Below, one piece after another: positions 3,875 to 29,689 of a DNA stretch of 64,000 nucleotides. Each line of letters opens with the position of its first letter. The first letter of the stretch is position 1. The translations under genes and the position numbers were made by a program. The notes under the pieces are model-generated. The model worked only from the letters and a program-made list of their open reading frames with translations. It made no database searches and was not told where the DNA came from. The stretch is from the IMG/VR virus record IMGVR_UViG_3300020165_000007, positions 206,384 through 270,383 of that record, one strand, 5' to 3'.

Positions 3875-4807
3875 ATGAGAATTATAGTTACAGGAGGATT
3901 AGGTTTTATAGGTTCTAATTTTGTTAATCTATTGAATGAGAGATTACCAAAAATCGAAGTAGTAATTTTAGATAAGATGACCTACGCAGCAGACCCAAAT
4001 AGTATTATTAAGAATAATAAATTAATTAAAAAAGATATTTGTGATGTCACACCTGAAGATTTAGGTGTATATGATTATATTGTTCATTTTGCCGCTGAAA
4101 GTCATGTAGATAATTCAATATCAGATGGTAGACCTTTTATGAACACGAACATTATTGGAACATTTAACTTAGTTGAATGTGCAAAACAAAATAAATCTTT
4201 GAAAAAGTTTATTCACATATCCACTGATGAGGTATACGGTGATATGGCAGATTCTGAATGGTTAAGTTCGAATGAGGACCACAACTTATCCCCAAGTTCT
4301 TATTACTCATCATCTAAAGCATCTTCAGACATGATTGTGTTGTCGTCTCACAGAACATTTGGTTTACCTTACCTTTTGACAAGAACTTGTAACAACTATG
4401 GTGAAAACCAAAATAAAGAGAAGTTTTTACCTAAAATTTTTGATTCTATAATTAACGAAAAAACAGTTCCTGTTTACGGTGATGGAAAACAGATTAGAGA
4501 GTGGATGTATGTTAAAGATAATGTTGAAGTAATCTTTGACTTGATGATGGATGATAAAGTCGTAAATGAAGTATACAATATTGGTACTGACAATACTTTC
4601 TATAATTTAGAATTAGTTAAAAAGATATCTGAAATTATCGGTAAAGACGTAACATTTGAATTTGTTACTGACCGTTTAGGTCACGATAGAAAATACAATT
4701 TAGATTGTACGAAACTTAAAGAATACTACAAGTCAAAGGGTAAAGAGTACCAACCAAAAGATATTATTGATTGGATGAATCAGTTCCTCCTTGAAGAAGT
4801 GGTATAA
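3875..4807 (+). CDS. rfbB: dTDP-glucose 4,6-dehydratase (RfbB/RmlB-like extended SDR)
   Basis: GGLGFIG, HFAAESHVD, ISTDEVYG, YSSSK, NNYG, DRLGHDRKY motifs. Confidence 0.92.
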   Translation: MRIIVTGGLGFIGSNFVNLLNERLPKIEVVILDKMTYAADPNSIIKNNKLIKKDICDVTPEDLGVYDYIVHFAAESHVDNSISDGRPFMNTNIIGTFNLVECAKQNKSLKKFIHISTDEVYGDMADSEWLSSNEDHNLSPSSYYSSSKASSDMIVLSSHRTFGLPYLLTRTCNNYGENQNKEKFLPKIFDSIINEKTVPVYGDGKQIREWMYVKDNVEVIFDLMMDDKVVNEVYNIGTDNTFYNLELVKKISEIIGKDVTFEFVTDRLGHDRKYNLDCTKLKEYYKSKGKEYQPKDIIDWMNQFLLEEVV

Positions 4808-10618: not shown

Positions 10619-11677
10619 TTACTCTTGAGTCATAATATACTTCTTACCATTATAGATATATAAACTACCAAATGGAAGGTCTAATAAATTATCGATTCTC
10701 TGACCCATAACATTATAATAGTTATTATCTAGTGGTCGTTGAGTATTTTGAATCTCACCTACACTGTTAGTAGTGTTGTCTAACAAGACCGCATCAATTG
10801 CATGTACTACACCATTTTGAGCTTCTAAATCAGCTAAGACGACTGTAGCAGTGCCGTTAATTGTTACTGTTTCACCGACACCGACTGTCAAAGTACCACC
10901 ACCAACTGTGGTCGCTTCCAGTCCATCATATAAATCAGTACTCATAACAGTAGTACCTAATACGTGATACAAAAGAATGTCAGTCAAATTAGGAAGAACT
11001 AAAAGGTCAGTAACCTCAACACCCAACGTAGTTGCCAATGCGACGAACGCATCGTCAGTCGGTGCGAATACTGTAAAGGTACCTTCACCTTCTAAAGTAC
11101 TTTGTAGACCTCCGGCAATAACAGCTGCTTCGAGGTAGTTATGGACATCACTTCCTTCAATCCAGTCCCATACTGTTGCCACTGCAGGTGTACCCGGTGG
11201 AAAAACAACCGCATCGATAACGTGGACTACACCATTGTCAGTAATAAGGTCTGCCACAGTTACTGAAGCTACACCATTTATTGTAATAGTCATACCATCT
11301 GATTGTATGTACATTGGTTCTTCAGGGAGTAAAGTGCCTAACATAGAATTAATTGACGGTGGAAGAAGCACCTCTCCTAAATATACTTCCGGAAGTACGT
11401 GGTATAAAAGAATATCAGTAAGATTAGGTAGTGCAAGTAAATCTTCTACCTCAACATTCAATTCATATGCTAACGCAATAAATGCATCATCAGTTGGTGC
11501 AAATACGGTAAAAGTGCCCGATGTGTCACTTAATGCATCGACAAGACCAGCAGATACAACAGCGGCTTCCAACAATGTATGGTCTTCACTATTAACGATT
11601 ACATCTACTACTGTAGATTGAGAAAAACTAATTAGGGATGTTAAGGCCAACCCAAAGGCCATTAGTACTTTTTTCAT
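10619..11677 (-). CDS. Secreted tandem fasciclin (FAS1) protein with T9SS-like C-terminal domain
   Basis: Signal peptide; two FTVFAPTDDAF..ILLYHV..NGVVH(V/A)IDAV repeats; C-terminus YYNVMGQRI..GSLYIYNGKKYI. Confidence 0.88.
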   Translation of the reverse strand: MKKVLMAFGLALTSLISFSQSTVVDVIVNSEDHTLLEAAVVSAGLVDALSDTSGTFTVFAPTDDAFIALAYELNVEVEDLLALPNLTDILLYHVLPEVYLGEVLLPPSINSMLGTLLPEEPMYIQSDGMTITINGVASVTVADLITDNGVVHVIDAVVFPPGTPAVATVWDWIEGSDVHNYLEAAVIAGGLQSTLEGEGTFTVFAPTDDAFVALATTLGVEVTDLLVLPNLTDILLYHVLGTTVMSTDLYDGLEATTVGGGTLTVGVGETVTINGTATVVLADLEAQNGVVHAIDAVLLDNTTNSVGEIQNTQRPLDNNYYNVMGQRIDNLLDLPFGSLYIYNGKKYIMTQE

Positions 11678-11776: not shown

Positions 11777-11807
11777 AAAAAAGACTCCTCATTATAAGGA
11801 GTCTTTT
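11777..11807. terminator. Intrinsic terminator
   Basis: AAAAGACTCCT-CATTATA-AGGAGTCTTTT. Confidence 0.85.
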
Positions 11808-13264
11808 AACATAGTAAAAAATTTATCTTGTCTATTATTATCAGGTTTTTCAAAAACTTTTTCCATATTGTACTTACCTATTCTTTTTGGAATTTTTAAT
11901 TCATTGTATTCTATGTAATCATCTTCATAATCTCTTTCAATAACCCCATTAATAACTCCACGGGTTTGTGATAATGAGAATCTTTTATAATTTTTATCAA
12001 AACCTGTATTCACTAACCACACTTTTACTTTGTGGTTATTCTCAACCCTATTTCTAAACATATTGGTGTAATCAGATATTTTCCTTGGTAGGAATGGGTC
12101 CCCAAAACAAGGTGAGAACGTTGTGGTAGGTTCAGTAACTCCAACTTCAGTACCCGCAACTTTTGAAGTATACCCTAACTTAAAGTACTCAACTGCTTGT
12201 TCTGTATTTAATAATGATATAGGTGGTAATACACCAAAAGCGTCAAAAGATAGAAAAAATATATTCTCAACCCCTAAACCTCTACCTGGCATACTTACCT
12301 TAACCTCACGTCTTATTTGGTCCAATGGATAAGAAACCCTAATGTTCTCTGTTATACTACTATCACTAAAATCAACATCACCTTCCTCATCAACTATAAC
12401 ATTCTCTAATAATGAGGTATTTGTTTTAGTGAATTTACTATGTATTGCGTCCCATATTACAGGTTCTTTATACTCATCTAAATCTATGAGTTTAGCGTAA
12501 CATCCTCCTTCAAAGTTATATATATAATCATCATACCATCCGTGTTCATCATCACCAATAAAATACTTTAAAGGGTCAGAAGATAGGGTAGTCTTACCAG
12601 TACCTGATAGTCCAAAAAATAAATTAACACCTCTACCGTCTTTAGTATTAGAATTAGCAGAACAATGCATCGGTAAGACTCCTCTATCAACTAAAAGAGT
12701 ATTCATAACGGTAAAGACACTTTTCTTTATCTCACCCGTATAACTCGTACCAGCTATTAAGATTTTTCTATCATCAAAATCTAATATTACAAAATTTTCA
12801 TTTTTAACATCTTCAGGTCTATTTTTACTTACAAAATCAGGGCAATGTAATATTTCCCATTCAGTAAATGTAGTTGAGAATGTTGTGACAAAACTTTGTG
12901 GGTCAATTAACATATTATTAAAGAATATGATAGCCCATGGTTCTGTACTTTCTATATTAAAAGTTGCACTGTGTTCATAATTGTAACCTGCAACTTGTCT
13001 AGCTCTGAAAGTTTTTGCGTTTTCTATATATTCTTTAATTTCATTTTTTAATGAAATATAACTATCTCTACTAACTCGTTGGTTTATGATTCTTTCAAAA
13101 TCGATAGTCTTATCTGTATATTTCCCCTCAGAAAAGTATCTATCTTTAGGTGACCTACCCGTAAATTTACCAGTATTAAAATGTAATAAACCCTCTTTGG
13201 TGGTCTTCATTCCTCTCTCCTTAGCAAGGGTCATTAATTGCTCAGTAGTTTCGTAATAAACCAT
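11792..13264 (-). CDS. pckA: Phosphoenolpyruvate carboxykinase (ATP)
   Basis: TGRSPKD, MHCSAN, FGLSGTGKTTLS, IGDDEHGW, FEGGCYAK, LENV, WLVNTG motifs. Confidence 0.95.
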   Translation of the reverse strand: MVYYETTEQLMTLAKERGMKTTKEGLLHFNTGKFTGRSPKDRYFSEGKYTDKTIDFERIINQRVSRDSYISLKNEIKEYIENAKTFRARQVAGYNYEHSATFNIESTEPWAIIFFNNMLIDPQSFVTTFSTTFTEWEILHCPDFVSKNRPEDVKNENFVILDFDDRKILIAGTSYTGEIKKSVFTVMNTLLVDRGVLPMHCSANSNTKDGRGVNLFFGLSGTGKTTLSSDPLKYFIGDDEHGWYDDYIYNFEGGCYAKLIDLDEYKEPVIWDAIHSKFTKTNTSLLENVIVDEEGDVDFSDSSITENIRVSYPLDQIRREVKVSMPGRGLGVENIFFLSFDAFGVLPPISLLNTEQAVEYFKLGYTSKVAGTEVGVTEPTTTFSPCFGDPFLPRKISDYTNMFRNRVENNHKVKVWLVNTGFDKNYKRFSLSQTRGVINGVIERDYEDDYIEYNELKIPKRIGKYNMEKVFEKPDNNRQDKFFTMLKDSL

Positions 13265-13269
13265 TTTTT

Positions 13270-14145
13270 TTAATTTGTTAATTCATCAACCTGTATTTTA
13301 AGTTGTTGTTGTTCCAACTGATAATCTTTAATTCTTTTTTTGGCGACTTCACAATAGTTTTTTGAGATATCAATTCCTATCCATTTTCTACCTAACATTT
13401 CGGCGGCTAAGCAAGTTGTTCCTGAACCGTTGAATGGGTCGAGTATTATATCTTCTTTATATGAAAGTATTTTAATCGCTCTGTACGGTATATCTAAAGA
13501 GAATGTCGCCTTTGTTTTTTGTTTGGTATCTGCAAAGTAATTCCATTGACCGAAAACTAGTGACATGAAATCTTTCTTATCTTTATCTTCATAAACAAGT
13601 TTCTTTCTCATCCCACCTTTTTTAGTGTCTTCAACCATTTGGTGTTCACCTTTCCATTGTGGAGTACCTTTTACCTTTTTCTTATGTAAGTTTTTATAAG
13701 CCAAAATGACACATTCCTTAGGGTTATAAATATACGGTGAAGAAGGACTCATCCAACTTCCCCAAGCAGTGGTCTTACTTCTATGAGGTGAACTTTCCTC
13801 TAAATCAACAATACCGAAGAATCCAAAACCAATCTCTTTCATTATCATCCACATCTCTGCAGAAAAATAAATTCTACCACCTTTGTCCTGTCGGTTTATT
13901 TCATAAGGTATGTTGATAGCAATCCTACCATCATCTTTAAGTACTCTGTAAGCCTGTGTTAACCAATCTTTCGCAAAGACTTTATACTCTTCGAAATATT
14001 TGTCGTCATCCCAACTATCATAATCAATACCAACACCATAAGGTGGTGATGTAACAATAAGGTCAATCGACCCCTCCTCCATCACCTCCATTTTCTTTAT
14101 AGAGTCTGACGTATAAATCGTGTTTGTTTCCATCTTCATTTTCAA
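13270..14145 (-). CDS. Beta-class N4-C/N6-A DNA methyltransferase
   Basis: TSPPY near N-terminus, DPFNGSGTT near C-terminus. Confidence 0.92.
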   Translation of the reverse strand: MKMKMETNTIYTSDSIKKMEVMEEGSIDLIVTSPPYGVGIDYDSWDDDKYFEEYKVFAKDWLTQAYRVLKDDGRIAINIPYEINRQDKGGRIYFSAEMWMIMKEIGFGFFGIVDLEESSPHRSKTTAWGSWMSPSSPYIYNPKECVILAYKNLHKKKVKGTPQWKGEHQMVEDTKKGGMRKKLVYEDKDKKDFMSLVFGQWNYFADTKQKTKATFSLDIPYRAIKILSYKEDIILDPFNGSGTTCLAAEMLGRKWIGIDISKNYCEVAKKRIKDYQLEQQQLKIQVDELTN

Positions 14146-16067: not shown

Positions 16068-17699
16068 TTAATCTACCCTAAATACATAATAATCGTGACC
16101 ATCAATTCTAATATCATATTCTACACCATCATAATGTGATATATTGTGACCAACACCATCCGTATCCACCGCATCCTCAATTATCTCATCTTTATTTAAG
16201 AATTCCTCAAGGTCTAAATCGTAATCTTTAATATAATTTTGTGGGTTAGACCTAACGTCACTTAAATACTCATCCACCTTTTTTTCTATCATTTCCTCAG
16301 TGGGTTCTCCCTCAGGACTTAATGTTAAATCATCTCTCTCCTCTTCTAACTCATCTATTTTATCATATACTTCACCCCTTTCATCACTACTATAAGGTAA
16401 CGAGTCAGTATCTCTTGTCTTTCTATAAAGTTCTTCAATCTCTTGGTCTAATTCTTCGTGTCTTTCCTTTTGTTCTGTAGATAACGGTAGTTCATCTTCA
16501 TCGAATATAGATTCCCAATCATCTCTAACATAATCATAATACCAACTCTCAAAATAACTGACAATAGAATCTATGTCTATGTAATTCATCAAATAGTCTT
16601 CGTTAAATGACTCCATTAACCCTACGTCATTAACCAAGTCGTTTAATCTAGATTTTGCGAGTTCGTAAACATCATCCCATTCACCCACAATATATTCACT
16701 ATCTGTTTCATTTTCACCCATCCATTTAAATGCTAAAATTTCTCCAGGATAAAAATTATTAGTCTCAGGTATTAAATTATATATGTCCTCATCTTCACCA
16801 ACTTCATTCACTAACCACTCATTTCTTAAACCACTCATCACAGCATTTGCCTTTCTTCCTACCTCATCTAATTCGTTGTTTTCAGGATTCCACGCATCTC
16901 TTTCTCTTATATCGTCCATCCTCCTTAGTAATCTTTCTCTTCTTATTCTATCATCTCTTTGGGTTCGTCTTTGTAACTCTTGTTTCGCTTTAATTTCGTC
17001 TTTAAATAATTCGATATCACTAGCGTAATTTGTTGACATGTATCTTTGTATAACATTATCAATCTTTTCAAACTCAGGTGTCCCTAAAATCCACCCCACT
17101 TTAAATGAATCATCAGGCGCATCATAGAAAATTTGTTTTCCATCATATTTTTGTAACATTGCAACTTTATAAAACTTACTACCTGATTTAGCTTTTTTAT
17201 CTAAAAAATAAAATAATTTACCGTCTCTATTGTAGGACATAAAGTGACTATCACTACTTTTAGCTGCTGTACACCATTTACTGCCCGCTCCGTAATAACA
17301 ACTAGCCTCATGTGTCTTTGGTGTTATTACAGTAAACCTGTCGTCTTCATACACTATGTCGGCCCCATCTATTTTTTTAACGTCCCTCCTTACCTTATTT
17401 TCGTGTTTTTCAATCGCATCTGTAATATCTTTTAAAGTATTGTATTGATTAATATCTTTTATTTCTAAATTTTTTTGAAATTTTATAAACTTCTCTACCG
17501 CAATTTTCGCTTTAACTAAATCATCATTTACATTTTCAGATGAAATGACCTTACCTAAAAAGTTTAAAAACTTTTGGTTGGATGATAGTTCTATAGATAA
17601 TAAAAATATTTTTTTTATATCCTCAGGTTTGAACTTATCTTTATATCTTAATAAAAACTCGTCTTTTCTTCCTTCTAATAATACTTTACTAAGATTCAT
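16068..17699 (-). CDS. Large hypothetical with ASCYYG..KWCT domain and acidic C-terminal region
   Basis: 543 aa; MNLSKVLLE leader; paralogous domain in 27475..28818; TATTTAT at 17717-17723. Confidence 0.8.
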   Translation of the reverse strand: MNLSKVLLEGRKDEFLLRYKDKFKPEDIKKIFLLSIELSSNQKFLNFLGKVISSENVNDDLVKAKIAVEKFIKFQKNLEIKDINQYNTLKDITDAIEKHENKVRRDVKKIDGADIVYEDDRFTVITPKTHEASCYYGAGSKWCTAAKSSDSHFMSYNRDGKLFYFLDKKAKSGSKFYKVAMLQKYDGKQIFYDAPDDSFKVGWILGTPEFEKIDNVIQRYMSTNYASDIELFKDEIKAKQELQRRTQRDDRIRRERLLRRMDDIRERDAWNPENNELDEVGRKANAVMSGLRNEWLVNEVGEDEDIYNLIPETNNFYPGEILAFKWMGENETDSEYIVGEWDDVYELAKSRLNDLVNDVGLMESFNEDYLMNYIDIDSIVSYFESWYYDYVRDDWESIFDEDELPLSTEQKERHEELDQEIEELYRKTRDTDSLPYSSDERGEVYDKIDELEEERDDLTLSPEGEPTEEMIEKKVDEYLSDVRSNPQNYIKDYDLDLEEFLNKDEIIEDAVDTDGVGHNISHYDGVEYDIRIDGHDYYVFRVD

Positions 17700-17799: not shown

Positions 17800-17931
17800 A
17801 TGGGATGTGGATGTAAAAAAAAGGCTCAACAAGCTCAACAACAAGCACAAGTTCAGCAACAAGATAATACTAAGTCTGTACAAGAAGCGGTAAATAAAAC
17901 TGTGGAAAAGTATTATAAGAAAAAAGACTAA
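17800..17931 (+). CDS. 43-aa MGCGCK microprotein (absent from track)
   Basis: MGCGCKKKAQQAQQQAQVQQQDNTKSVQEAVNKTVEKYYKKKD; TATTTAT at 17756-17762, terminator downstream. Confidence 0.75.
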   Translation: MGCGCKKKAQQAQQQAQVQQQDNTKSVQEAVNKTVEKYYKKKD

Positions 17932-17951: not shown

Positions 17952-17978
17952 AAAAAGGGGTGTAATACATCCCTTTTT
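17952..17978 (+). terminator. Intrinsic terminator
   Basis: AAAAAGGGGTGT-AAT-ACATCCCTTTTT. Confidence 0.75.
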
Positions 17979-18026
17979 CTATTTATAGTATTTTTATTTA
18001 TTGGTATATTTCATAAAAAGTATAAT

Positions 18027-18857
18027 ATGGAGACAATTTTTTTTGGGGAGAATTTAGGGAATTTATTTTTAAATGAAATAATAAAGGAGTACGATAATAT
18101 TGACACTTCTCATAAAACCAATTTAGAGTTAATTGATGTTACTCAATTTATTATATTAAAAGGTAAAACTTCAATATCTAACCCTATAAATTATTCTAAA
18201 TTATTTAGAAATTATATGGAAAGTAAGATAGGTGTTGAGAATAACTATAGTATTATAGACTTAATTGAGTACGGGTCTTCAATTAATTACAAAGATGTAA
18301 TAGTAAAAAGTGTTTTCGATAGTAATTCGTTATACCCTAATCGTCTTTTTTTAGATTCACATCAACAAGGAGAGTATGTGATTGACGACATTCAAAATAT
18401 AATATACACTACAAGTGAGTCGTTATATTCTAAAATATTATTAGAAGGTGATTATTCTCAATATATAAATAAGAGGTTAAAAAACAATAAGTCATTTATT
18501 TGTGATAAATTTTATGGAATGAGCTTATCCCCACTCAAAATATATGAAACATATTTAAAATATATTTCACATAATCTTTTTGAAAAACAACTGTGTAAAG
18601 ACATATCTTATAATCTATACTACGAAGGTGATATAAATAAATTAAATTGGGAGACCATGTCTTTTGTAATTGATAGTAATTCTTTAGTTGTTAATAAAGA
18701 ATGGGTGAAGTCATTAATATTGGACTTATTTGACTTTAACATTAATCATGTGAAAAAACATTTATCTTTGGATAAATATGACTTTGAGAATGACATTACT
18801 GGTGTATCTCCTTGTTGGAAGGTTAGAGATAGAACTTCAGAAATGGTTCTACTATAA
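18027..18857 (+). CDS. Degenerate MetK (SAM synthetase)-fold protein
   Basis: N- and C-terminal segments align by eye with MetK, but GHPDK, GAGDQG and GGGAFSGKD are absent. Confidence 0.5.
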   Translation: METIFFGENLGNLFLNEIIKEYDNIDTSHKTNLELIDVTQFIILKGKTSISNPINYSKLFRNYMESKIGVENNYSIIDLIEYGSSINYKDVIVKSVFDSNSLYPNRLFLDSHQQGEYVIDDIQNIIYTTSESLYSKILLEGDYSQYINKRLKNNKSFICDKFYGMSLSPLKIYETYLKYISHNLFEKQLCKDISYNLYYEGDINKLNWETMSFVIDSNSLVVNKEWVKSLILDLFDFNINHVKKHLSLDKYDFENDITGVSPCWKVRDRTSEMVLL

Positions 18858-19133
18858 TAGGAATTCTTTGACCTTGTGAATTGCTTCATTTAAGTCTTTG
18901 AACGATAGGTCTGGAGCTAACAATTGTATATCAGGTTTTTCCCCTTCTTTAATCTCTACTAATGTTAGAGCGGGTAGATATTCATTTTTAGTTACATCAA
19001 CAAATTGTTTATATTCTTTTTCATGTTCATCGACATTTCTTTCAATATACTCTAAATTTTCTTCTTTAAACATTTTTTTTAAAGAATAACAGTGAGGACA
19101 CCCTTCCATACTATATAAGATTACTGTTTTCAT
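18852..19133 (-). CDS. Glutaredoxin-like protein
   Basis: LYSMEGCPHC..LP thioredoxin-fold motif. Confidence 0.88.
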   Translation of the reverse strand: MKTVILYSMEGCPHCYSLKKMFKEENLEYIERNVDEHEKEYKQFVDVTKNEYLPALTLVEIKEGEKPDIQLLAPDLSFKDLNEAIHKVKEFLL

Positions 19134-19450
19134 TATAATACGTTTTTAACCATTTCTAATATTTGATTTTCACTAACTAAACCAACTTTATTACCCACAT
19201 TTTCTCCTCCACTAAAAATTTTAATATAGGGAATAGAACGTACCCCTAGTTGAGTAGCCATTTGTTGGTCTTCTTCAATGTTAAATTTATAAACTTTCAT
19301 TTCACTTCCTTCTTCCTCCAATTTTTTAGCAACACTTTCGATAATCGGACTTAACATTCTGCAAGGTCCGCACCAATCCGCGTACAAATCTACTATAAAT
19401 TTTTCACCTGAATTTATTTTTTCTTGCAATTCCTGTGCATTTATTTTCAT
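19133..19450 (-). CDS. trxA: Thioredoxin
   Basis: YADWCGPC, GVRSIP. Confidence 0.95.
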   Translation of the reverse strand: MKINAQELQEKINSGEKFIVDLYADWCGPCRMLSPIIESVAKKLEEEGSEMKVYKFNIEEDQQMATQLGVRSIPYIKIFSGGENVGNKVGLVSENQILEMVKNVL

Positions 19451-19797
19451 ATTGTTTTATATTTTTTAAGTTGATTTAAGTAGAAGATTATACTATCAGA
19501 AGAATCTTCATTACATAAGTAATAAAATTTATATGTATTTTCATATTCATTTTTAGTAAAGTATAATAATGTTTTAGTATCTAAAAACTGTATTAATCCT
19601 TTATTGTAAATAGTGACTTGACCATCAAAATATTTTTTTGACCATATAATTTTATTTTTTTTTAAAGTTATTCTTAACGCGTCAATAGTATAAAAATCAG
19701 TCTCAATAATAGAAGGTAAACTTCCAATTATATTCTCAGATAAGATTGATACTTTATTTGGTATACCATAATTGTTATGTTTTTCTTTATCTTTCAT
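19447..19797 (-). CDS. Hypothetical protein
   Basis: 116-aa ORF abutting neighbours. Confidence 0.65.
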   Translation of the reverse strand: MKDKEKHNNYGIPNKVSILSENIIGSLPSIIETDFYTIDALRITLKKNKIIWSKKYFDGQVTIYNKGLIQFLDTKTLLYFTKNEYENTYKFYYLCNEDSSDSIIFYLNQLKKYKTI

Positions 19798-20867
19798 TAA
19801 ACTTCAAGTAATTCTTTTTCTATACTTTTTGAGTTTTTTACATAATCAATACTATCACTAATTACTTTAGTTATTTTATATGGGTCAGCGTTAGACGCAG
19901 GTCTTCTATCTTCTAGATACCCCTTCCACGTTTTACTCGTTTGTAGTGGAACTCGTATAGACGCCCCTCTATCAGAAACACCCCAACTAAATTTAGTAAT
20001 ATTCTGGGTTTCATGTAACCCTGTTAGTCTCATCTCATTACTTGAACCATAATTATTAATGTGTATATCATGTCTATCCTTGAAAGATTTAAATATATTT
20101 TGATAGTACTCTTCATCTCCGTCTTCCCTCATTTTTTTATTAGAGAAGTTACAGTGAAGTCCTGAACCGTTCCAATCACCTGTAACAGGTTTAGGATGAA
20201 ATTCGATATCATAACCGTAATCCTCAGACATCTGATGTAAAATATATCTAGTAATCCATAGGTCATCTCCAGCCTTAATTTTACCCTTACTGAATACTTG
20301 GTATTCCCACTGACCTAGCATGACCTCAGCGTTCGTTCCAGTGATGTCTATACCGGCCATTATACAGTTTTCCATATGTTTATCAACAAACTCCCTACCT
20401 GTTACTTGTCCGTTACCTACACCGCAATAGTACTTTCCTTGTGGTTCAGGAAATCCATTTTTAGGAAAACCTATAGGTTTGCCGTCTTTCATTAGAGTAT
20501 ATTCTTGTTCAAATCCAAACCATAAATCCTCATCATCTTCATTAAATAATCCCCTACTATTACTTTCGTGTAATGTACCATCAGGGTTTAAAACTTCACA
20601 TAGAACTAAATAACTTTCTAATAATCCATTATTCAGTGGATTTGGATAAAGTGTTACAGGTTTTAGTATACAATCGGAAAAATGTCCCTCAGCTTGTTCA
20701 GTGGACGACCCATCGAATGACCATTCAGGGCAATCAGTTAACCCTACACCATGAACCGTTTTACCATGAATAGTGTGTGTAGGTGGGTTGATTACTTTTA
20801 CTTTACTTCTGAGATTAGGTTCAGGATTATACCCATCTAACCATATGTATTCTAATTTAATTTTCAT
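19797..20867 (-). CDS. glnII: Glutamine synthetase type II
   Basis: EYIWLDG, WSFDGSST, FGFEQEY, NAEVMLGQWEYQ, HPKP..DWNGSGLH, RLTGLHET, SIRVP, EDRRPASNADPY. Confidence 0.93.
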   Translation of the reverse strand: MKIKLEYIWLDGYNPEPNLRSKVKVINPPTHTIHGKTVHGVGLTDCPEWSFDGSSTEQAEGHFSDCILKPVTLYPNPLNNGLLESYLVLCEVLNPDGTLHESNSRGLFNEDDEDLWFGFEQEYTLMKDGKPIGFPKNGFPEPQGKYYCGVGNGQVTGREFVDKHMENCIMAGIDITGTNAEVMLGQWEYQVFSKGKIKAGDDLWITRYILHQMSEDYGYDIEFHPKPVTGDWNGSGLHCNFSNKKMREDGDEEYYQNIFKSFKDRHDIHINNYGSSNEMRLTGLHETQNITKFSWGVSDRGASIRVPLQTSKTWKGYLEDRRPASNADPYKITKVISDSIDYVKNSKSIEKELLEV

Positions 20868-21698: not shown

Positions 21699-24452
21699 TT
21701 AGAAGTTATATCTTAAAGATGCATTCCAAGTTCTACCAAATCCAAACCACACTGAGTTACGTGTGTCAATACCGTTCCACGTATCTGATGTTTCAGATGC
21801 GTGAATATTAGTGTTTGACTCCGCAATGTATGTAGTGTCGAATAAGTTATTTACGTTAACTCTAAACGTTGCATTGTTACCTAACAAGTCAAAACGAGTG
21901 GTAACACCCAAATCAACTAAATTGTATGACGGTAACTTCAACGCCCCTTGGTTATCGGGTGTGAAGAAGTCAGAACCTGTGATTGAGTAGTCAGCGTAAA
22001 GTCCGTCAACATATCTCATACCTAAGTCTACATTCACACCTCTAGTTACTCTGTAGTCAACACCTAAGTTTCCAACAACTTGTGCTGCGTCACCAACTTT
22101 AGCCCCTTCAGTATAAAGAACTCCTGTACCAATCTCTTCTTGATTCTCATCAAACAAGGTGGTTTCAAAATCCTTTGTATACTTCCAATCTCCCAATGAT
22201 AACATACCTGTAAGTTTTAGGTTGTTAGTAGGTCTATATGTAGACTCTAACTCGATACCATTGTGTTGAACGTCAATATCTCTAAACTGTGCAAATCCAT
22301 CGACACCTTGAGCATTAGTCAATGAAAGTGCTCTAAATCTATTACCCCATGTTGTTGCATATGCATTAACATTAACAGTAAGCTCGTCACCTAAGTATCC
22401 GTAACCTAACTCAAATGAAGTAATTTCTTCATTTTGTAAGTCGTCATTAATGTCATTACCATAACTTGGGAATACCGCTGAGAAGTTTGGTTGACGTGAG
22501 ATGAATCCCGCGTTAGCAAAAACATTAGACTTTTCATCGATATTATAGTTAGCACCACCTTTAATGTATCCACCACCTAAATTAGCCGTTTCTGAAATTG
22601 GATTACCTGGTTGGTCAAAGTAATCTTCTCTTTGGAATGATTGGTTCGATAACCCCGCTTGTACAACCGCGTTTATTCTTCCATCATCATTATATTCAAT
22701 AAGTCCGTTTACACCGGCCCATCCAACGTTTCCTACATTATAGTAGTCAATTTTTGGACCGTTAAGACCTGTGTTATTAAACGGACTAGCGTTTACAGTT
22801 GTGTTAACAAACTGACCTACACTATTATCATTACCTGTTGAGTAGTATGCGTCAAAACCCATTAGGTTATTTACTGTACGATAGTGATAACCTTTGTACT
22901 TTCTGAGGTCAATACCTACAGAAGCCCTAATCTTGTCTTTATCGTACTCTAAATTAGAGATTGCACCTACCCAGTCGTGTGAGTTCATAGACGCTCTACG
23001 AATCATCCCACTTCTATTAACACCACCTTCATCATATCCATTTGAACCGATGAGTTGTCCGAAAAAAGGACTGTCCATTAAGGTTGAGTCAGGAATTGTT
23101 CCGTCAGCATCAATACCATAAGTCTGTGCCCCTGATTGGTTATCAGCGACAATAGCGTCAAAATCAATTGTACCATCATCGTTACGAAATTGTGTTGTAC
23201 TGTCTTCATACATGAATTCATACAAATCCTTTCTATAAGGATGGACATCGTAGTTTCTACCACGAGGACCTGTTCCTCCACCTCGACCAGCAGAACCATA
23301 GACTGAAGTATTCAATGTTAAATCTTCGTTGATGTCCCAATCCCAGTTAAAGGTTGCAAGTGGTTTGTTATAAAAGTTTCTTCTCATAGAGAACTCTTCC
23401 CCATTTAAAGTACCTCCGTTTGTGTTCCAACGAGCGTTGATACCATCGTCATTCTGTTCACCAAATGTTTGAAAGTCTCTAATAGAAACCCAAACGTCTC
23501 TTTGGTGGTGCCATTGACCCGCACCTAAAATAGATAGGTTCAATGCGTGTTTTGAACCTTCAGGTTGGTAACCTACAGCTCCGAAGTATGTCCAACCTTC
23601 ACCACTGGTGTTGTCGACATATCCATTACCTGCCCATCTACTCATTAAGAACGATGACGCCCATCCATTCTCATTTTTACCGGTATTGTAGTTAACACTT
23701 GTCTTAGTGTAACCATCATTACCAATAGTTTCAGATACTGAACCACCTTGTTCTTTCTCCGCCGCTTTAGTAGAAATAGAAACGGTACCACCAACAGATG
23801 GAACCGCAAGACGAGTAGCACCCAATCCTCTCTGGATTTGAATACCTGAAGCAACGTCAGTAAGACCTTGCCAATTAGACCAATATACCCATCCATTTTC
23901 CATATCATTAACAGGTTGACCGTTAATTAGGAATGATGTGTTACGTTGGTCGAAACCTCTAAGAGATATTCTTGAGTCACCATAACCACCACCTTGTTTC
24001 GTAGCATAGACACCAGGTGTTCTATTCATGATTTCAGGGAATTCTTGGTTTCCGACTTTCAAAGCAATCTCTGACGGACCAATGGTTGATACCGCAACTG
24101 GTGTTTCTCTCACTTTCGCAAAGTCAACAACGTTAACGATTACGGATGCCTCATCCAAACCCAACGCAGTAGCGGTTAATGATATGGTACCCATATCTTT
24201 TAGTGCCGGTGTAGTTATTGTTTCATACCCGATAAAACGTACAACTAGGTTTCCTGTGGCCTCACTGTTGAGAGTGAATTCACCTGATACATTAGTTGAT
24301 GTTCCTCGTGTGTTACCTTCAAGATAGACATTCGCTCCGATGAGCTCATTACCTGTCTTAGAGTCAACAACTTTACCTGTAATTTGGGAGAATAGACTCG
24401 TAGTTGAGACCATCATTACTCCTAAGATAAACAATCGATTAATTAATTTCAT
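21699..24452 (-). CDS. TonB-dependent receptor with N-terminal carboxypeptidase-regulatory-like domain
   Basis: Signal peptide; GKVVDSKTGNELIGANV; plug TPGVY..ISLRGF..LINGQP; C-terminal NNLFD..GFGRTWNASLRYNF. Confidence 0.93.
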   Translation of the reverse strand: MKLINRLFILGVMMVSTTSLFSQITGKVVDSKTGNELIGANVYLEGNTRGTSTNVSGEFTLNSEATGNLVVRFIGYETITTPALKDMGTISLTATALGLDEASVIVNVVDFAKVRETPVAVSTIGPSEIALKVGNQEFPEIMNRTPGVYATKQGGGYGDSRISLRGFDQRNTSFLINGQPVNDMENGWVYWSNWQGLTDVASGIQIQRGLGATRLAVPSVGGTVSISTKAAEKEQGGSVSETIGNDGYTKTSVNYNTGKNENGWASSFLMSRWAGNGYVDNTSGEGWTYFGAVGYQPEGSKHALNLSILGAGQWHHQRDVWVSIRDFQTFGEQNDDGINARWNTNGGTLNGEEFSMRRNFYNKPLATFNWDWDINEDLTLNTSVYGSAGRGGGTGPRGRNYDVHPYRKDLYEFMYEDSTTQFRNDDGTIDFDAIVADNQSGAQTYGIDADGTIPDSTLMDSPFFGQLIGSNGYDEGGVNRSGMIRRASMNSHDWVGAISNLEYDKDKIRASVGIDLRKYKGYHYRTVNNLMGFDAYYSTGNDNSVGQFVNTTVNASPFNNTGLNGPKIDYYNVGNVGWAGVNGLIEYNDDGRINAVVQAGLSNQSFQREDYFDQPGNPISETANLGGGYIKGGANYNIDEKSNVFANAGFISRQPNFSAVFPSYGNDINDDLQNEEITSFELGYGYLGDELTVNVNAYATTWGNRFRALSLTNAQGVDGFAQFRDIDVQHNGIELESTYRPTNNLKLTGMLSLGDWKYTKDFETTLFDENQEEIGTGVLYTEGAKVGDAAQVVGNLGVDYRVTRGVNVDLGMRYVDGLYADYSITGSDFFTPDNQGALKLPSYNLVDLGVTTRFDLLGNNATFRVNVNNLFDTTYIAESNTNIHASETSDTWNGIDTRNSVWFGFGRTWNASLRYNF

Positions 24453-25394: not shown

Positions 25395-27086
25395 TCAAAA
25401 AGGTAAATCGAAATCTACGAATTCATCTATATTTCCAATATTATCTTCCCATACCAAAAAATCAAAACTATTATTAAGTTTTTTATTTTTATGGAAATAT
25501 GATTTGGTTTTCATTACTTTACCATTACTAAACTCTTTAATCATTTTAGGTAAATCAAAATTATTACTATTAAACAATAATTCAATTTTATTATCTAAAA
25601 CTTCTAAAGGAACGTTCCACGTATCATCTAAATTACTATTAAATTTTCCTCTACTCTGAACTCGTTTTAAACTACTTTTTAATATTCTATATTCTACTGT
25701 TGCCCTGTCTTTATTCAATATATCATTTTTTCTTAATGATATAATTAAAGATTCAGGTTTTTCAATATAGGTCCTAACACAATTGGACTGTACTTGAGAC
25801 TCCTCATTATATTCTCCTGAACTTGTTAAAACTACAGGGTAATAATTTTCATTTGGCAGTACTTCTATCGGTATTTCTATAACCTGAAGGGTATGGTCGT
25901 TATATATTCTCTTTATTTTACCTTTCTTGTATGTTTCAACTAATTCACTTATGATATAATGTTCATCATTAAATTGAGTTATGTTAGTAAATTTCATCTT
26001 GAAGTCTTCTCCATACTTTTTTAAAGATTTTATAATATGTAGATGGTCTTTTATGATTGACCAATTCATATCTTTATTTTCGTTAATTAAATTAACTATT
26101 CTTTTTTTATCGATATTACTAAGGTCGAAGTAAGACCTTCTATTAAAATCAACGAAATTGAACCATGTGGAATACATATCCACACTATTTTTACTAAAAA
26201 AACTTTCTCTTATTTTATTAAAATAGTCTACCCCTAAATTGTGAAATACTTCGAATAAAATAAAAAAGTCAATATCTCTACCTTGGTTTAGTATCTTTCT
26301 GACTTTCTTACCCTTTAATCTATTTTTATCCATAAAAAACTGTGTTAGGTTTCCCTTTTTAATAAGTTCTCTTTTTGGGAGTTGTAGGACTCTATACTCT
26401 AATACCGAATCAGGGTAAGACACTTTGTTAACTTTTAAGTATAGTTTATACATTTCACCCTCTAAGTGGTTTGACGTATATTCCATTAAAATATTGGTTT
26501 GCTTATGTAGTTGATTAATAAATATTTTTATTGATTGTAGAGCAATTTCATCTCCTACCGTATTAAAGTTATTAGTTGTGGAAATCATATCTTTCCATTC
26601 CTTATTTTTACTTACTACATGATTAAAGTTTCTTCTTACAGCAAGTTTTATTTCTGTTAAAAATGGTAACTGAAATCCATTACATCTTACTTTTTTGGAA
26701 ATTATCTTTTTACGTTTCTTAGATATGTGTCCGTGGTAAAAATTTTTACTTTTAGTATTATAAGTAACAAAACTAATTTCTTTATTGACTTTAAAGTATT
26801 GACTACCAACCAATCTTTTAAAAATATTATGATAAAACCTAATACTGATTTTATCGCCTGATTGTACAACTTTAACCTTTATTTTAATAAGATGTAGTTG
26901 TTTAGTCTTATCAGAATAAAACTTTTTTACATCTTCGTCTTTAATTATCTCATCTTTTTCAAAAAAAAATTTTCCGTATTTTAGAGTTGATTTTTCGGAC
27001 TGTACGTAACTTATTTCACAACTATTTTTAAAATATTCTAATATGTTAATTGTCCCTTCTTTTTCATACAGTATAGTTTCACCCAT
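25395..27086 (-). CDS. PcfJ-like domain protein
   Basis: C-terminal EESQVQSNCVRTY..IISLR..ATVEY preceded by DHLH. Confidence 0.75.
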   Translation of the reverse strand: MGETILYEKEGTINILEYFKNSCEISYVQSEKSTLKYGKFFFEKDEIIKDEDVKKFYSDKTKQLHLIKIKVKVVQSGDKISIRFYHNIFKRLVGSQYFKVNKEISFVTYNTKSKNFYHGHISKKRKKIISKKVRCNGFQLPFLTEIKLAVRRNFNHVVSKNKEWKDMISTTNNFNTVGDEIALQSIKIFINQLHKQTNILMEYTSNHLEGEMYKLYLKVNKVSYPDSVLEYRVLQLPKRELIKKGNLTQFFMDKNRLKGKKVRKILNQGRDIDFFILFEVFHNLGVDYFNKIRESFFSKNSVDMYSTWFNFVDFNRRSYFDLSNIDKKRIVNLINENKDMNWSIIKDHLHIIKSLKKYGEDFKMKFTNITQFNDEHYIISELVETYKKGKIKRIYNDHTLQVIEIPIEVLPNENYYPVVLTSSGEYNEESQVQSNCVRTYIEKPESLIISLRKNDILNKDRATVEYRILKSSLKRVQSRGKFNSNLDDTWNVPLEVLDNKIELLFNSNNFDLPKMIKEFSNGKVMKTKSYFHKNKKLNNSFDFLVWEDNIGNIDEFVDFDLPF

Positions 27087-27474: not shown

Positions 27475-28818
27475 TTACCTAAAGATATGTAATTTTTTAT
27501 TATTCTCAATCTCGTCAGGTATTTTAACGTTTGGACTATTCTTTAAGTTAATTACCTGTAGGTTTTTCAAGTTACTTATCCCCTTAGGTATCGTTGTAAG
27601 ATTATTATTGTTCGGTAAGGATAGGAATACTAAATCTTTCAACTCTTCGATTTCTTTAGGTAGTTCTTTAATAATACCTTCCAAGTGAAGGGCATTTAGA
27701 TTTTTAAATCTACCTAGCGTTTTTGGGATAGTAAGTGCGACTTCATCTGAAGATTCCCCGTATCTATTATTCGACTTAACAAAATCAAATCTTTCAAGAT
27801 TATCAGGTAGAGTTTCAAAAAACTCATCAAACCCATATAATGATATAAACTTAGAAGCGGAATCTTTTGGATATTCAACAGATATCGAAGTTCCTTCTCT
27901 ATTAGTTAAACTTTTCATAAATTCCGGTTTAAATACTTCTTTAAGTTCTTCGTTTTTATTCAAAAATTCTATTAGATTAATTTGTCTATCATTTGCCCCC
28001 ATATACTGATTAGATGGGAAATGAAACTGATACCTATTTGCAGGTAATCCACTTTTTTCTCCTGTAGTCACACCTCCATCTCGGAAAGATTCAGGTTTGT
28101 TTGGAATTACCACATATAAAGGACCATCTTTAATATAAGTATTAAAGTAGTTACTTCTTCCAGGTGCAGATGTACACCAACCACTTTCACCTTTTGCAAT
28201 ATCTAAACCATATCCACCGTAAAAACAAGCCGCATCGTGCCCTAACTTTCCAGTGTCTTCGATTTTTACAACGGTCCACTTACTACCTTTAAAAATTACT
28301 TCACCACCTGGATGTTCATAAGTTTTAGCGGCTTCTTCTTTTTCTGATTTAGAAGCTTTAGTTTTATCCAAACTAAAATCTACAGTAATATCTGCTAATT
28401 TTTCAATATTAAGTTTATTAATATCTCTAAGTTCTTGGTCAAGTTGACCTTTGAACCTGTCGAACTTTTGTAAAGACTCTGTAGTTTTATATAAATCCTC
28501 AAAAAATAGTTCTTGTAACCTACTCATTTCACTTTTAAATTCTGAAGTACCATACTCCGATTCAGGCTCAAGTCTAAGAAATTGTTTTACCAACCACGGT
28601 GTATATGTACCGGCCTTTTTAATTTCGTCTCCGTCTCTACGAGTCGTAGGGTCAGCTAATACTATTTTATTCAAATCCTCTAAAGACATTCTAGCAGGTT
28701 TTACTTTGTCACCTTTTTTCTTAGGTTCAGTATAAGTCTTCCTAAGAATTTCATAACGACCCTGTTCTAAAATTATATGTCTAATAATACCACTAAATTT
28801 CATATTATTCTTTTTCAT
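27475..28818 (-). CDS. AACFYG..WCT domain protein with C-terminal leucine-rich repeats
   Basis: IIRHIILEQ leader (likely start 28803); LRRs IPKTLGRFKNLNALHL, LPKEIEELKDLVFLSL, IPKGISNLKNLQVINL; TATTTAT at 28819-28825. Confidence 0.8.
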   Translation of the reverse strand: MKKNNMKFSGIIRHIILEQGRYEILRKTYTEPKKKGDKVKPARMSLEDLNKIVLADPTTRRDGDEIKKAGTYTPWLVKQFLRLEPESEYGTSEFKSEMSRLQELFFEDLYKTTESLQKFDRFKGQLDQELRDINKLNIEKLADITVDFSLDKTKASKSEKEEAAKTYEHPGGEVIFKGSKWTVVKIEDTGKLGHDAACFYGGYGLDIAKGESGWCTSAPGRSNYFNTYIKDGPLYVVIPNKPESFRDGGVTTGEKSGLPANRYQFHFPSNQYMGANDRQINLIEFLNKNEELKEVFKPEFMKSLTNREGTSISVEYPKDSASKFISLYGFDEFFETLPDNLERFDFVKSNNRYGESSDEVALTIPKTLGRFKNLNALHLEGIIKELPKEIEELKDLVFLSLPNNNNLTTIPKGISNLKNLQVINLKNSPNVKIPDEIENNKKLHIFR

Positions 28819-28843: not shown

Positions 28844-29689
28844 TTACGAATTATAATTCAAAATTAATAGTTCGGTTCCTTTATTTTGTGTTTTTCCTTT
28901 TTTAGCTGACGCCGCTTTGACGAAGTCTTTCTGTTCCCAAAGATAATCATTTTTTGGAAACCACCCATTTAAAAGTTCAAAATCATAGTAAGATAATGAA
29001 AACTTTCCTTTGATATTGTTTAGAATTTTTGCCAACCTTTCGTGGTCATTCCTATCAAAGTCGTGATTAGAATAGTAGTTCTCTGTTTTCCAGTACGGTG
29101 GGTCTAAGTAAAAGTATGTCTTATCTCCATCATATTTGTTAATGAGTTCTTCAAAGTCCATATTTTCAACAAAGTTAATTTTTGAGAATTTGTCTATCCA
29201 CTTTTCGTTTTTCAGTTTATCTCTAAAAGTAAGGTATTTTGATTTGTACTTACCCTTTAAGTCGATGTAATTTGATGACTCTGGTTTACTGCCGCTGAAT
29301 ACCTGTGTAAGAATGTAAGCATACTTAGCAGCAACATCATAGTCAGGGTAATTTATTTCAAAGTCATCTGCAAATATCTCAGACTGGAACTCTTTGAATA
29401 GGTCTTTATATTCTGTAGGTGTGTTCTCCACTCCTCGTTGTTGACAAGGGATAGACTCAACAGATTTAAGAAGTTCTGTAGGGTTTTGCACACACATAAA
29501 GAGATTGTAGTTCAACGGATTGAAATCGTTATAAACAATGTTCTTTAGATTTGGGTACTCATCCAAATCCATATTGTAGTAACACCAAAACATACCTCCG
29601 AATGGTTCAACATATGTCTCCATATCTTTAGGGTAATATGGGACTATCCATTTACCTATCCTACTTTTTCCTCCTATATAACTAAGCAT
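28844..29689 (-). CDS. Dam/D12-class N6-adenine DNA methyltransferase
   Basis: YIGGKS, EPFGG, YNDFN, LDPPY; TATATTTG at 29707-29714. Confidence 0.92.
   Translation of the reverse strand: MLSYIGGKSRIGKWIVPYYPKDMETYVEPFGGMFWCYYNMDLDEYPNLKNIVYNDFNPLNYNLFMCVQNPTELLKSVESIPCQQRGVENTPTEYKDLFKEFQSEIFADDFEINYPDYDVAAKYAYILTQVFSGSKPESSNYIDLKGKYKSKYLTFRDKLKNEKWIDKFSKINFVENMDFEELINKYDGDKTYFYLDPPYWKTENYYSNHDFDRNDHERLAKILNNIKGKFSLSYYDFELLNGWFPKNDYLWEQKDFVKAASAKKGKTQNKGTELLILNYNS

Follow-up and report, generated by a model that had tools for sequence, protein, structure and literature searches.

A miniaturised and apparently non-catalytic SAM-synthetase-fold protein from uncultured aquatic jumbo phages

The stretch of DNA analysed here (64,000 nucleotides, hereafter the window) is the last 64 kb, positions 206,384 to 270,383, of the IMG/VR virus record IMGVR_UViG_3300020165_000007, a 270,383-bp record estimated to be 88% complete. 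Within a long run of minus-strand genes, the only sizeable plus-strand gene, an open reading frame (ORF), encodes a protein of 276 amino acids, named here mini-MetK, which is preceded by a micro-ORF and converges on a glutaredoxin gene (Table 1). A preliminary description, made by eye from the letters and their translations, had read it as a catalytically eroded protein with the fold of MetK, the S-adenosylmethionine (SAM) synthetase or methionine adenosyltransferase (MAT). It had pointed to three segments that parallel MetK, to the lack of the motifs GHPDK, GAGDQG and GGGAFSGKD and to a length deficit of about 100 residues.

Taken alone, the sequence of mini-MetK resembles MetK only at the edge of significance. 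Against Pfam, residues 177–254 matched PF02773 with an E-value of 0.067 and a score of 13.6 bits, the cut-off being 25; single-sequence phmmer against the PDB gave nothing meaningful, PHROGs gave nothing useful beyond a weak match of 21 residues, tblastn against 50,697 phage records returned no match, canonical phage MetKs included, and hhalign against one MetK sequence only was too weak. Likeness to other enzyme families was not found in Pfam, PHROGs, the PDB or NCBIfam. A word-indexed search provided 35 unnamed homologues of about 275 amino acids from metagenomes of marine and fresh waters, which made up the first alignment of the family. PF02773 was matched by 24 of the 35 (best E-value 2.3e-5), and the central MetK domain, PF02772, by neither mini-MetK nor any of these homologues. 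When the family profile was run against the PDB with HMMER, the best sequence matches were MATs, in collinear blocks pairing mini-MetK residues 9–90 with MAT 19–100 and residues 169–248 with MAT 264–340. A local hhalign comparison of 153 family members of at least 200 amino acids with ten MetKs (from E. coli, four phage-borne and five from Flavobacteriales) aligned residues 171–273 with E. coli MetK 273–377 (89% probability, E-value 2.3e-6) and residues 10–67 with E. coli MetK 19–76 (E-value 8e-4). Furthermore, two relatives matched TIGR01034, the NCBIfam metK equivalog, with E-values of 3e-6 and 4.8e-5, their scores not exceeding 26.4 bits where the cut-off is 309.4; the mini-MetK of this phage (P0001) did not match this model. 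All three parallels seen by eye were recovered, in collinear order, by HMMER and hhalign.

The AlphaFold2 model of mini-MetK, built from the 35-homologue alignment, had a predicted local distance difference test score (pLDDT) of 90.6 and a predicted template modelling score of 0.87. In a Foldseek search of the PDB, the best 50 matches of this model were all MATs, with a top E-value of 1.5e-11 and query template modelling (TM) scores of 0.60–0.66. VIA-align, run against 48,161 chains, placed two bacterial MATs at Z 18.0 with 271 of the 276 residues aligned, an archaeal MAT at Z 12.3 and, next, an unrelated fold at Z 5.7, and a shape search of the ESM Atlas led to a MAT cluster (TM 0.76, 270 residues aligned). 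A feature-based protein atlas search gave noise-level matches only (0.76), and the single related viral model in BFVD was an uncharacterised protein of 208 amino acids from an uncultured phage. The family extends to still shorter proteins such as P0088, a member of 231 amino acids whose phage shares the gene order of this locus and in which the middle lobe is a single strand. Because the model of P0088 (pLDDT 92.0) still matches a MAT at Z 19.2, with 225 of its 231 residues aligned, the question of fold is settled for the minimal form as well, and on these models the MetK fold is established for the whole of mini-MetK and for the minimal form of the family. The presence of a MetK-fold protein in a phage, which the preliminary description had proposed to check with Foldseek and profile comparisons, is borne out by Foldseek, VIA-align, the ESM Atlas shape search and the profile methods alike, with fold matches to MATs only, well above what chance would give, and the hhalign E-value given above.

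The N-terminal and C-terminal lobes correspond to the terminal Pfam domains of MetK and flank a degenerate middle lobe (Table 1). In the N-terminal lobe the family has a signature of its own (N12, F41, G46, T48, D78 and Y82), and the position of GHPDK is occupied by F/Y-G-K/T-N. The middle lobe of MetK holds GAGDQG and contributes a large part of the adenine pocket. In mini-MetK this lobe amounts to approximately half of the central Pfam domain, lacks GAGDQG, is highly variable and the least conserved part of the protein, and is largely deleted in family members of 205–250 amino acids. The C-terminal lobe has kept from MetK the helix K/R-Y-I-x-x-N-L, the LDLFDF block and the C-terminal W-x3-D. 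The remnant of the MetK phosphate loop reads S/C-[DE]-x-[PF]-[YFH]-G-x-S-L...[KR] instead of GGAFSGKDPSKVDR, so that at the triphosphate-loop site S-[DE]-x-[PF]-[YFH]-G-x-S-L of the family stands against G-G-A-F-S-G-K-D-P of MetK. All that is retained in the FSGKD region is the Gly and the basic residue after it, the latter, aligned to MetK Arg272, in 147 of the 153 members.

GHPD, GDQG and FSGKD were found in none of the 35 homologues and none of the 153 aligned members and were present in the canonical MetK controls, so the motif loss noticed by eye is a property of the family. In the hhalign columns, MetK His14 is replaced by Y/F and Asp16 by K/T (both extrapolated without gaps from the N-terminal block), Lys265 by variable residues, Lys269 by S/N and Asp271 by S/E/K, none of them conserved; the columns of Glu42 and Glu55 likewise vary. 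Because His14, Asp16, the GAGDQG loop and Lys265/Lys269/Asp271 are lost, mini-MetK cannot, as far as its sequence can tell, make SAM by the mechanism of MetK. Other positions are nearly invariant among the 153 members: N12 (148), F41 (147), G46 (152), T48 (142), D78 (143), Y82 (143), S159 (151), G164 (151), S229 (146), D233 (147) and F235 (146). The sole alternative to Ser159 is Cys (codon 18501–18503), found only in this phage and in its closest relative, P0002. Exchange of Ser for Cys is typical of nucleophilic or metal-binding positions. The strand register relative to MetK would put N12, T48, D78 and Y82 on the helix side of the sheet, and this polar cluster of the first lobe is therefore probably buried and structural.

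An exhaustive profile search retrieved at least 276 representative clusters (50% identity) at E-values up to 1e-3, 160 of them at up to 1e-10. Among the matches listed, members range from 59 to 295 amino acids and none has the length of MetK; mini-MetK itself falls 108 amino acids below E. coli MetK (384) and 142 below Flavobacteriales MetK (418), in keeping with the shortfall first estimated. For close orthologue pairs with synonymous divergence (dS) of 0.05–1.5, the ratio of non-synonymous to synonymous divergence (dN/dS) was 0.056–0.12, and it was 0.23 for a pair nearly without differences. Purifying selection, near-invariant residues of its own and a large family apparently confined to phages together argue that mini-MetK is, as judged from these sequences, a repurposed protein under strong purifying selection and not a decaying one. 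The word ‘eroded’ in the preliminary description holds for the catalytic motifs and understates the case otherwise, as the dN/dS values and the invariant signature speak against decay. Taking homology, fold, motif loss and selection together, mini-MetK is almost certainly a phage-specific, miniaturised descendant of a bacterial-type SAM synthetase that has kept the N- and C-lobes of MetK, has a shrunken middle lobe and is dead for MetK chemistry.

The family is evolving rapidly. Mini-MetK is the most divergent of the conserved neighbours, with 44–48% identity against 56–98% for flanking genes, and in another comparison it was 34% identical where glutamine synthetase was 76%. Its predicted isoelectric point (pI) of about 5 and net charge of about −11 over some 270 amino acids are like those of ordinary MetKs. 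A role as a DNA mimic of the Ocr type was considered and rejected as unlikely because this charge is ordinary.

Identical or related proteins lie on contigs of up to 311 kb, and mini-MetK is among the core genes of an uncultured clade of jumbo phages from aquatic sources, with Flavobacteriales as the likely hosts. The family profile found no match in 401 genomes of the host class, the positive control (the phage’s own copy) scoring an E-value of 4e-113, and in these searches the family appears to be restricted to phage contigs. It should be noted that one Flavobacteriales metagenome-assembled genome (G001, the genome of contig L028) contains, besides its main metK, a second, divergent match to the MetK C-domain (C29:23293-23694), which may represent contamination or a second copy. 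The phage carries a full-length TonB-dependent receptor, 62–71% identical to those of marine Flavobacteriales (Polaribacter, Cryomorphaceae, MS024-3C); this identity indicates a flavobacterial host, as the preliminary description had presumed in naming a Flavobacterium MetK. The receptor gene itself is an auxiliary gene for the outer membrane that a jumbo phage has taken up. Among cultured phages none was close, the only likeness being a weak and partial one of the neighbouring 543-aa protein to jumbo phages of the PA5oct type: its N-terminal third is 28–35% identical to a ‘structural protein’ of PA5oct and to proteins of other Pseudomonas jumbo phages.

Table 1. Features of the mini-MetK locus and its surroundings (positions in the window unless a contig is named; aa, amino acids).
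Feature	Position	Strand	Basis or remark
mini-MetK coding sequence, 276 aa + stop	18027..18857	+	ORF; MetK fold without catalytic motifs
N-terminal lobe, aa 1-85, = Pfam S-AdoMet_synt_N	18027..18281	+	HMMER, hhalign; mean conservation 0.44
Degenerate middle lobe, aa 86-152 (~67 aa)	18282..18482	+	mean conservation 0.19, gap profile
C-terminal lobe, aa 153-276, = Pfam S-AdoMet_synt_C	18483..18854	+	PF02773, hhalign, TIGR01034 in relatives; mean conservation 0.40
MetK phosphate-loop remnant, aa 159-171	18501..18539	+	hhalign mapping, column counts
Micro-ORF, 43 aa (MGCGCK..., Q-rich linker, ...EKYY)	17800..17931	+	opens plus-strand island
Terminator-like hairpin between micro-ORF and mini-MetK, 12-bp stem + T run	17952..17978	+	consensus scan: 1 found vs 0.4 expected
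Promoter-like site, TTTATA-17-TATATT with TG, 17 nt before ATG	17982..18010	+	consensus match only
Glutaredoxin gene, convergent, overlaps mini-MetK 3' end by 6 nt	18852..19133	-	PF00462, synteny
Glutamine synthetase-like gene, 356 aa	19797-20867	-	most conserved neighbourhood gene
Extra island genes between micro-ORF and mini-MetK	L116 1665-4305; L025 4960-5949	+	
543-aa protein	16068-17699	-	acidic, repeat-like C-terminal half; divergently transcribed from mini-MetK island
N6/N4 DNA methyltransferase	13270..14145	-	PF01555 E 4.6e-40; SAM consumer
D12/Dam-class N6-adenine DNA methyltransferase	28844..29689	-	PF02086 E 3e-19; SAM consumer
ATP-dependent phosphoenolpyruvate carboxykinase	11792-13264	-	PF01293 E 5.5e-143; conserved in L025-L027
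Protein with two fasciclin domains	10619-11677	-	PF02469 E 4.8e-50
NAD-dependent sugar epimerase/dehydratase (GDP-mannose 4,6-dehydratase-like)	3875-4807	+	further plus-strand gene in mostly minus-strand region
TonB-dependent receptor, full-length (CarboxypepD_reg + Plug + barrel)	21699-24452	-	
PcfJ-like protein	25395-27086	-	conserved downstream of glutaredoxin/thioredoxin in distant relatives (~535-590 aa ORFs)
Leucine-rich-repeat-containing protein	27475-28818	-	conserved downstream of glutaredoxin/thioredoxin in distant relatives (~437-461 aa ORFs)

Gene order was compared over 16 viral contigs and six further contigs, which covered family members out to E-values of about 1e-12 to 1e-18. 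In this shared arrangement mini-MetK is the last gene of a short plus-strand island and converges, with an overlap of a few bases, on the glutaredoxin gene, a pairing kept throughout the family; the glutaredoxin gene is usually followed by a thioredoxin gene, an ORF of about 110 amino acids and, in many contigs, a glutamine synthetase gene. The micro-ORF, which heads the island in each of the related phages looked at, has orthologues of 41–59 amino acids in contigs L022, L026, L114 and L116 (34–55% identity, BLASTP E-values down to 7e-11), and its N-terminal Cys-Gly-Cys is invariant in all five copies; the encoded protein may be a partner of mini-MetK. Promoter-like sites in the region numbered 15 against 13.2 expected, so that the site before mini-MetK is weak, and the consensus used is that of sigma-70, from which Bacteroidota promoters differ. 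Upstream of mini-MetK no known RNA family or SAM riboswitch was detected, just a sub-threshold chance match to sraA. The island is apparently a variable accessory slot, holding in some phages one to three extra genes for proteins of 263–335 amino acids without a Pfam match, of which those of 329 and 335 amino acids are homologous to one another (27% identity). These extra genes in L116 and L025 were considered as mini-MetK paralogues and discarded (hmmsearch E-values above 0.8).

When positions 6001-8847 of contigs L004/L005 were compared with 18027-20867 of the window, the flanks (the 543-aa and 218-aa ORFs) were 98–100% identical and the block of mini-MetK, glutaredoxin, thioredoxin, a 116-aa ORF and glutamine synthetase just 44–80% identical. 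Because near-identical flanks surround a block of such low identity, the comparison suggests that the whole module from mini-MetK to glutamine synthetase has been exchanged by recombination between phage lineages. The glutamine synthetase-like gene retains 75–80% identity across otherwise divergent phages. A PII/GlnB-like regulator of this neighbour, an idea that arose from the ferredoxin-like repeats, was rejected, as no PII appeared in the fold lists and glutamine synthetase is missing from several family contexts. SAM-dependent DNA methyltransferases are encoded twice within 11 kb of mini-MetK and up to three times in related phages; radical-SAM and C5-methyltransferase genes were not found in the phage. 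Further genes of the window include the phosphoenolpyruvate carboxykinase, an unusual central-carbon auxiliary gene, and the protein with fasciclin domains, which are modules of cell-surface adhesion.

As to function, mini-MetK would seem, on balance, to be a pseudoenzyme, a module that binds without catalysing. The family combines homology to an enzyme family with family-wide loss of catalytic residues and purifying selection, and on all these counts agrees with the pseudo-enzyme or repurposed scaffold put forward in the preliminary description. Such a module would have preserved the fold, the N12/T48/D78/Y82 cluster and the remnant phosphate loop (S/C159...G164) while most of its surface and the middle lobe evolved fast. 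Mini-MetK is transcribed in the direction opposite to its neighbours, as part of the small island headed by the micro-ORF. In the manner of MetK itself, it would associate through its flat beta-sheet face with host MetK subunits and so tune host SAM synthesis instead of abolishing it, activation and inhibition both being conceivable. We put this mechanism, the likeliest of the specific ones, forward tentatively, as possible rather than probable, and by analogy: regulation of an active enzyme by a dead paralogue is common, and the flat sheet face provides the only known mode of association of MetK. About equally likely is a self-associating scaffold with a different partner or ligand, perhaps the micro-protein. 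Co-folding of a Flavobacteriales MetK, that of L109:769-2022, with mini-MetK gave an ipSAE of 0.00 in both runs, without controls, and counts neither way. Several observations weigh against a pseudoenzyme directed at host MetK. A Ser that is 99% invariant and replaced only by Cys, in a conserved Gly-containing loop, is the pattern of a nucleophile, and mini-MetK might therefore be a new enzyme and not a pseudoenzyme. The MetK interface is extremely conserved whereas the family changes fast and is variable at the polar positions of the flat face, which fits poorly with mimicry of MetK. Finally, a canonical MetK C-domain was not found in the 270-kb phage record, but as this record is about 88% complete a canonical metK may lie elsewhere in the genome.

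The nucleophile-like position is at the heart of a rival explanation in which mini-MetK is a neo-functionalised enzyme or small-molecule binder, with a new site made from the Ser/Cys159-[D/E]160...Gly164 loop and perhaps D78, Y82, N12 and T48, acting on a SAM-related or nucleotide-like metabolite. The near-invariant polar residues do differ from those of MetK, Cys is the only substitution for a Ser present in 151 of 153 members, the loop is a structural remnant of the MetK triphosphate loop, and purifying selection is strong. Nevertheless, we regard it as rather unlikely: all known substrate-binding residues of MetK are lost or variable, the lobe that supplies much of the MetK adenine pocket is degenerate or, in many members, deleted, N12, T48, D78 and Y82 would be structural if, as the strand register indicates, they lie on the helix side, and the searches above found no likeness to other enzyme families. 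Quite another activity, that of a divergent SAM synthetase serving as an auxiliary metabolic gene like the metK of Streptococcus prophages, could be imagined from the functional-looking metK genes in 138 phage records and from the SAM-consuming methyltransferases of this phage. It is highly improbable given that none of the 153 members has GHPD, GDQG or FSGKD, whereas canonical phage MetKs keep them, that His14, Asp16, Lys269 and Asp271 are replaced as described, that the middle lobe is halved or deleted, and that scores stay far under the cut-offs (13.6 against 25 bits for PF02773, 26 against 309 bits for TIGR01034). The sub-threshold Pfam match of the single sequence and the absence of any annotation for the family might even suggest a pseudogene in decay, or an ORF arisen by chance whose likeness to MetK is spurious, an explanation that is effectively refuted by the low dN/dS, by intact orthologues of constant length in many contigs and by two independent high-confidence models with fold matches at Z 18–19.

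A further alternative shares its target with the modulation of host MetK and differs in the outcome. The active sites of MetK are built from both subunits, and a dead subunit pairing with host MetK monomers could act as a dominant-negative poison that shuts down SAM synthesis and disables SAM-dependent defences such as type I restriction-modification (R-M) and bacteriophage exclusion (BREX) systems. The MetK fold is retained over the whole chain, and there is a precedent in the complex of the phage T3 SAM lyase with MetK, which was among the Foldseek matches (8bb1; bioRxiv 10.1101/2023.02.27.530186). The separately transcribed island and the fast evolution of mini-MetK, both frequent in host-interaction genes, would also fit. 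However, two SAM-dependent DNA methyltransferase genes of the phage lie within 11 kb of mini-MetK, and up to three are found in its relatives; as any phage methylating a genome of about 300 kb would depend on SAM, starvation for it would hurt the phage itself. Moreover, the positions aligned to catalytic and interface residues of the MetK flat face are variable, mini-MetK is the fastest-evolving gene of its neighbourhood whereas MetK is extremely conserved, and MetK dimers are generally held to be very stable, so that just newly made MetK would be affected. A poison of this kind, the main idea of the preliminary description, thus appears distinctly unlikely.

No pseudo-, mini- or non-catalytic MetK turned up in searches of the literature; the mini-MetK family is unannotated and undescribed, and would represent the first apparent non-enzymatic branch of the SAM-synthetase fold. 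SAM synthetase is among the most conserved enzymes, and here is a family that drops the chemistry and keeps the fold under strong selection. For enzymology it offers a natural minimal MetK scaffold, in whose short forms two lobes are enough. For phage biology it provides a candidate for the manipulation of host SAM metabolism in abundant phages of marine and freshwater Flavobacteriales, SAM supply being known to decide whether type I R-M and BREX succeed against a phage. The order of genes from the micro-ORF to a mini-MetK that converges on glutaredoxin may, in addition, serve as a signature and synteny marker for the uncultured jumbo-phage clade. Returning to the pseudoenzyme, it is conceivable, if somewhat doubtful, that mini-MetK is a virus-borne ‘prozyme’, a regulatory subunit that uses the ancestral dimer face to dock on host MetK and resets SAM production. 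If so, the resetting would feed the phage DNA methyltransferases or blunt SAM-dependent defences at a chosen time, and the MGCGCK micro-protein might work together with this regulatory subunit.

Among described phages, the ‘moraphages’ are a recently reported lineage of jumbo phages from aquatic habitats, for which Flavobacteriia are the predicted hosts (PMC12619734). The phage studied here resembles them in features of lifestyle, namely genome size class, aquatic source, glutamine synthetase and DnaJ genes and a Bacteroidota/Flavobacteriales host signal; SAM, MetK and methyltransferases are not mentioned in that paper.

With MetK/MAT (PF00438+PF02772+PF02773; TIGR01034) mini-MetK shares the three-lobe beta-alpha-beta-beta-alpha-beta fold over its whole chain (Z 18–19), collinear homology of the N- and C-lobes, the K/R-Y-V/I-x-x-N-I/L helix, the FFDL/LFDF block and the W-x3-D. 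It differs in that family members are 100–190 amino acids shorter, have the catalytic His, Asp and Lys replaced, stay under every curated cut-off, were found only in phage contigs and evolve fast; MetK is among the most conserved proteins. By fold mini-MetK belongs to the MATs, and by every sequence-level test it falls outside them. The canonical MetKs of phages (such as those of Streptococcus prophages Javan320 and phi-m46.1 and Staphylococcus phage UPMK_1) are likewise phage-carried genes for the MetK fold, but these proteins have 345–406 amino acids, are 46–63% identical to E. coli MetK and keep its motifs; most of the phage records that contain them are Streptococcus prophages.

The SAM lyase (SAMase) of phage T3 cleaves SAM and also binds and inhibits MetK (PDB 8bb1; bioRxiv 10.1101/2023.02.27.530186). 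The analogy with mini-MetK may be functional, both being phage proteins possibly aimed at host SAM supply or at MetK, whereas SAMase is an active enzyme of an unrelated fold and mini-MetK has the fold of MetK itself; no SAM lyase fold, PHROG or Pfam match was obtained for mini-MetK. T3 itself is not known to carry SAM-dependent methyltransferases that would have to be fed. A parallel of another kind is the prozyme of the S-adenosylmethionine decarboxylase of trypanosomatids, a dead homologue under selection in the SAM/polyamine pathway, which forms heterodimers with the active enzyme. Mini-MetK, as judged from its sequence, likewise appears to be a catalytically dead homologue kept under selection, but in the trypanosomatids the dead and the live copy are encoded in one genome, whereas for mini-MetK the only live copy would be that of the host.

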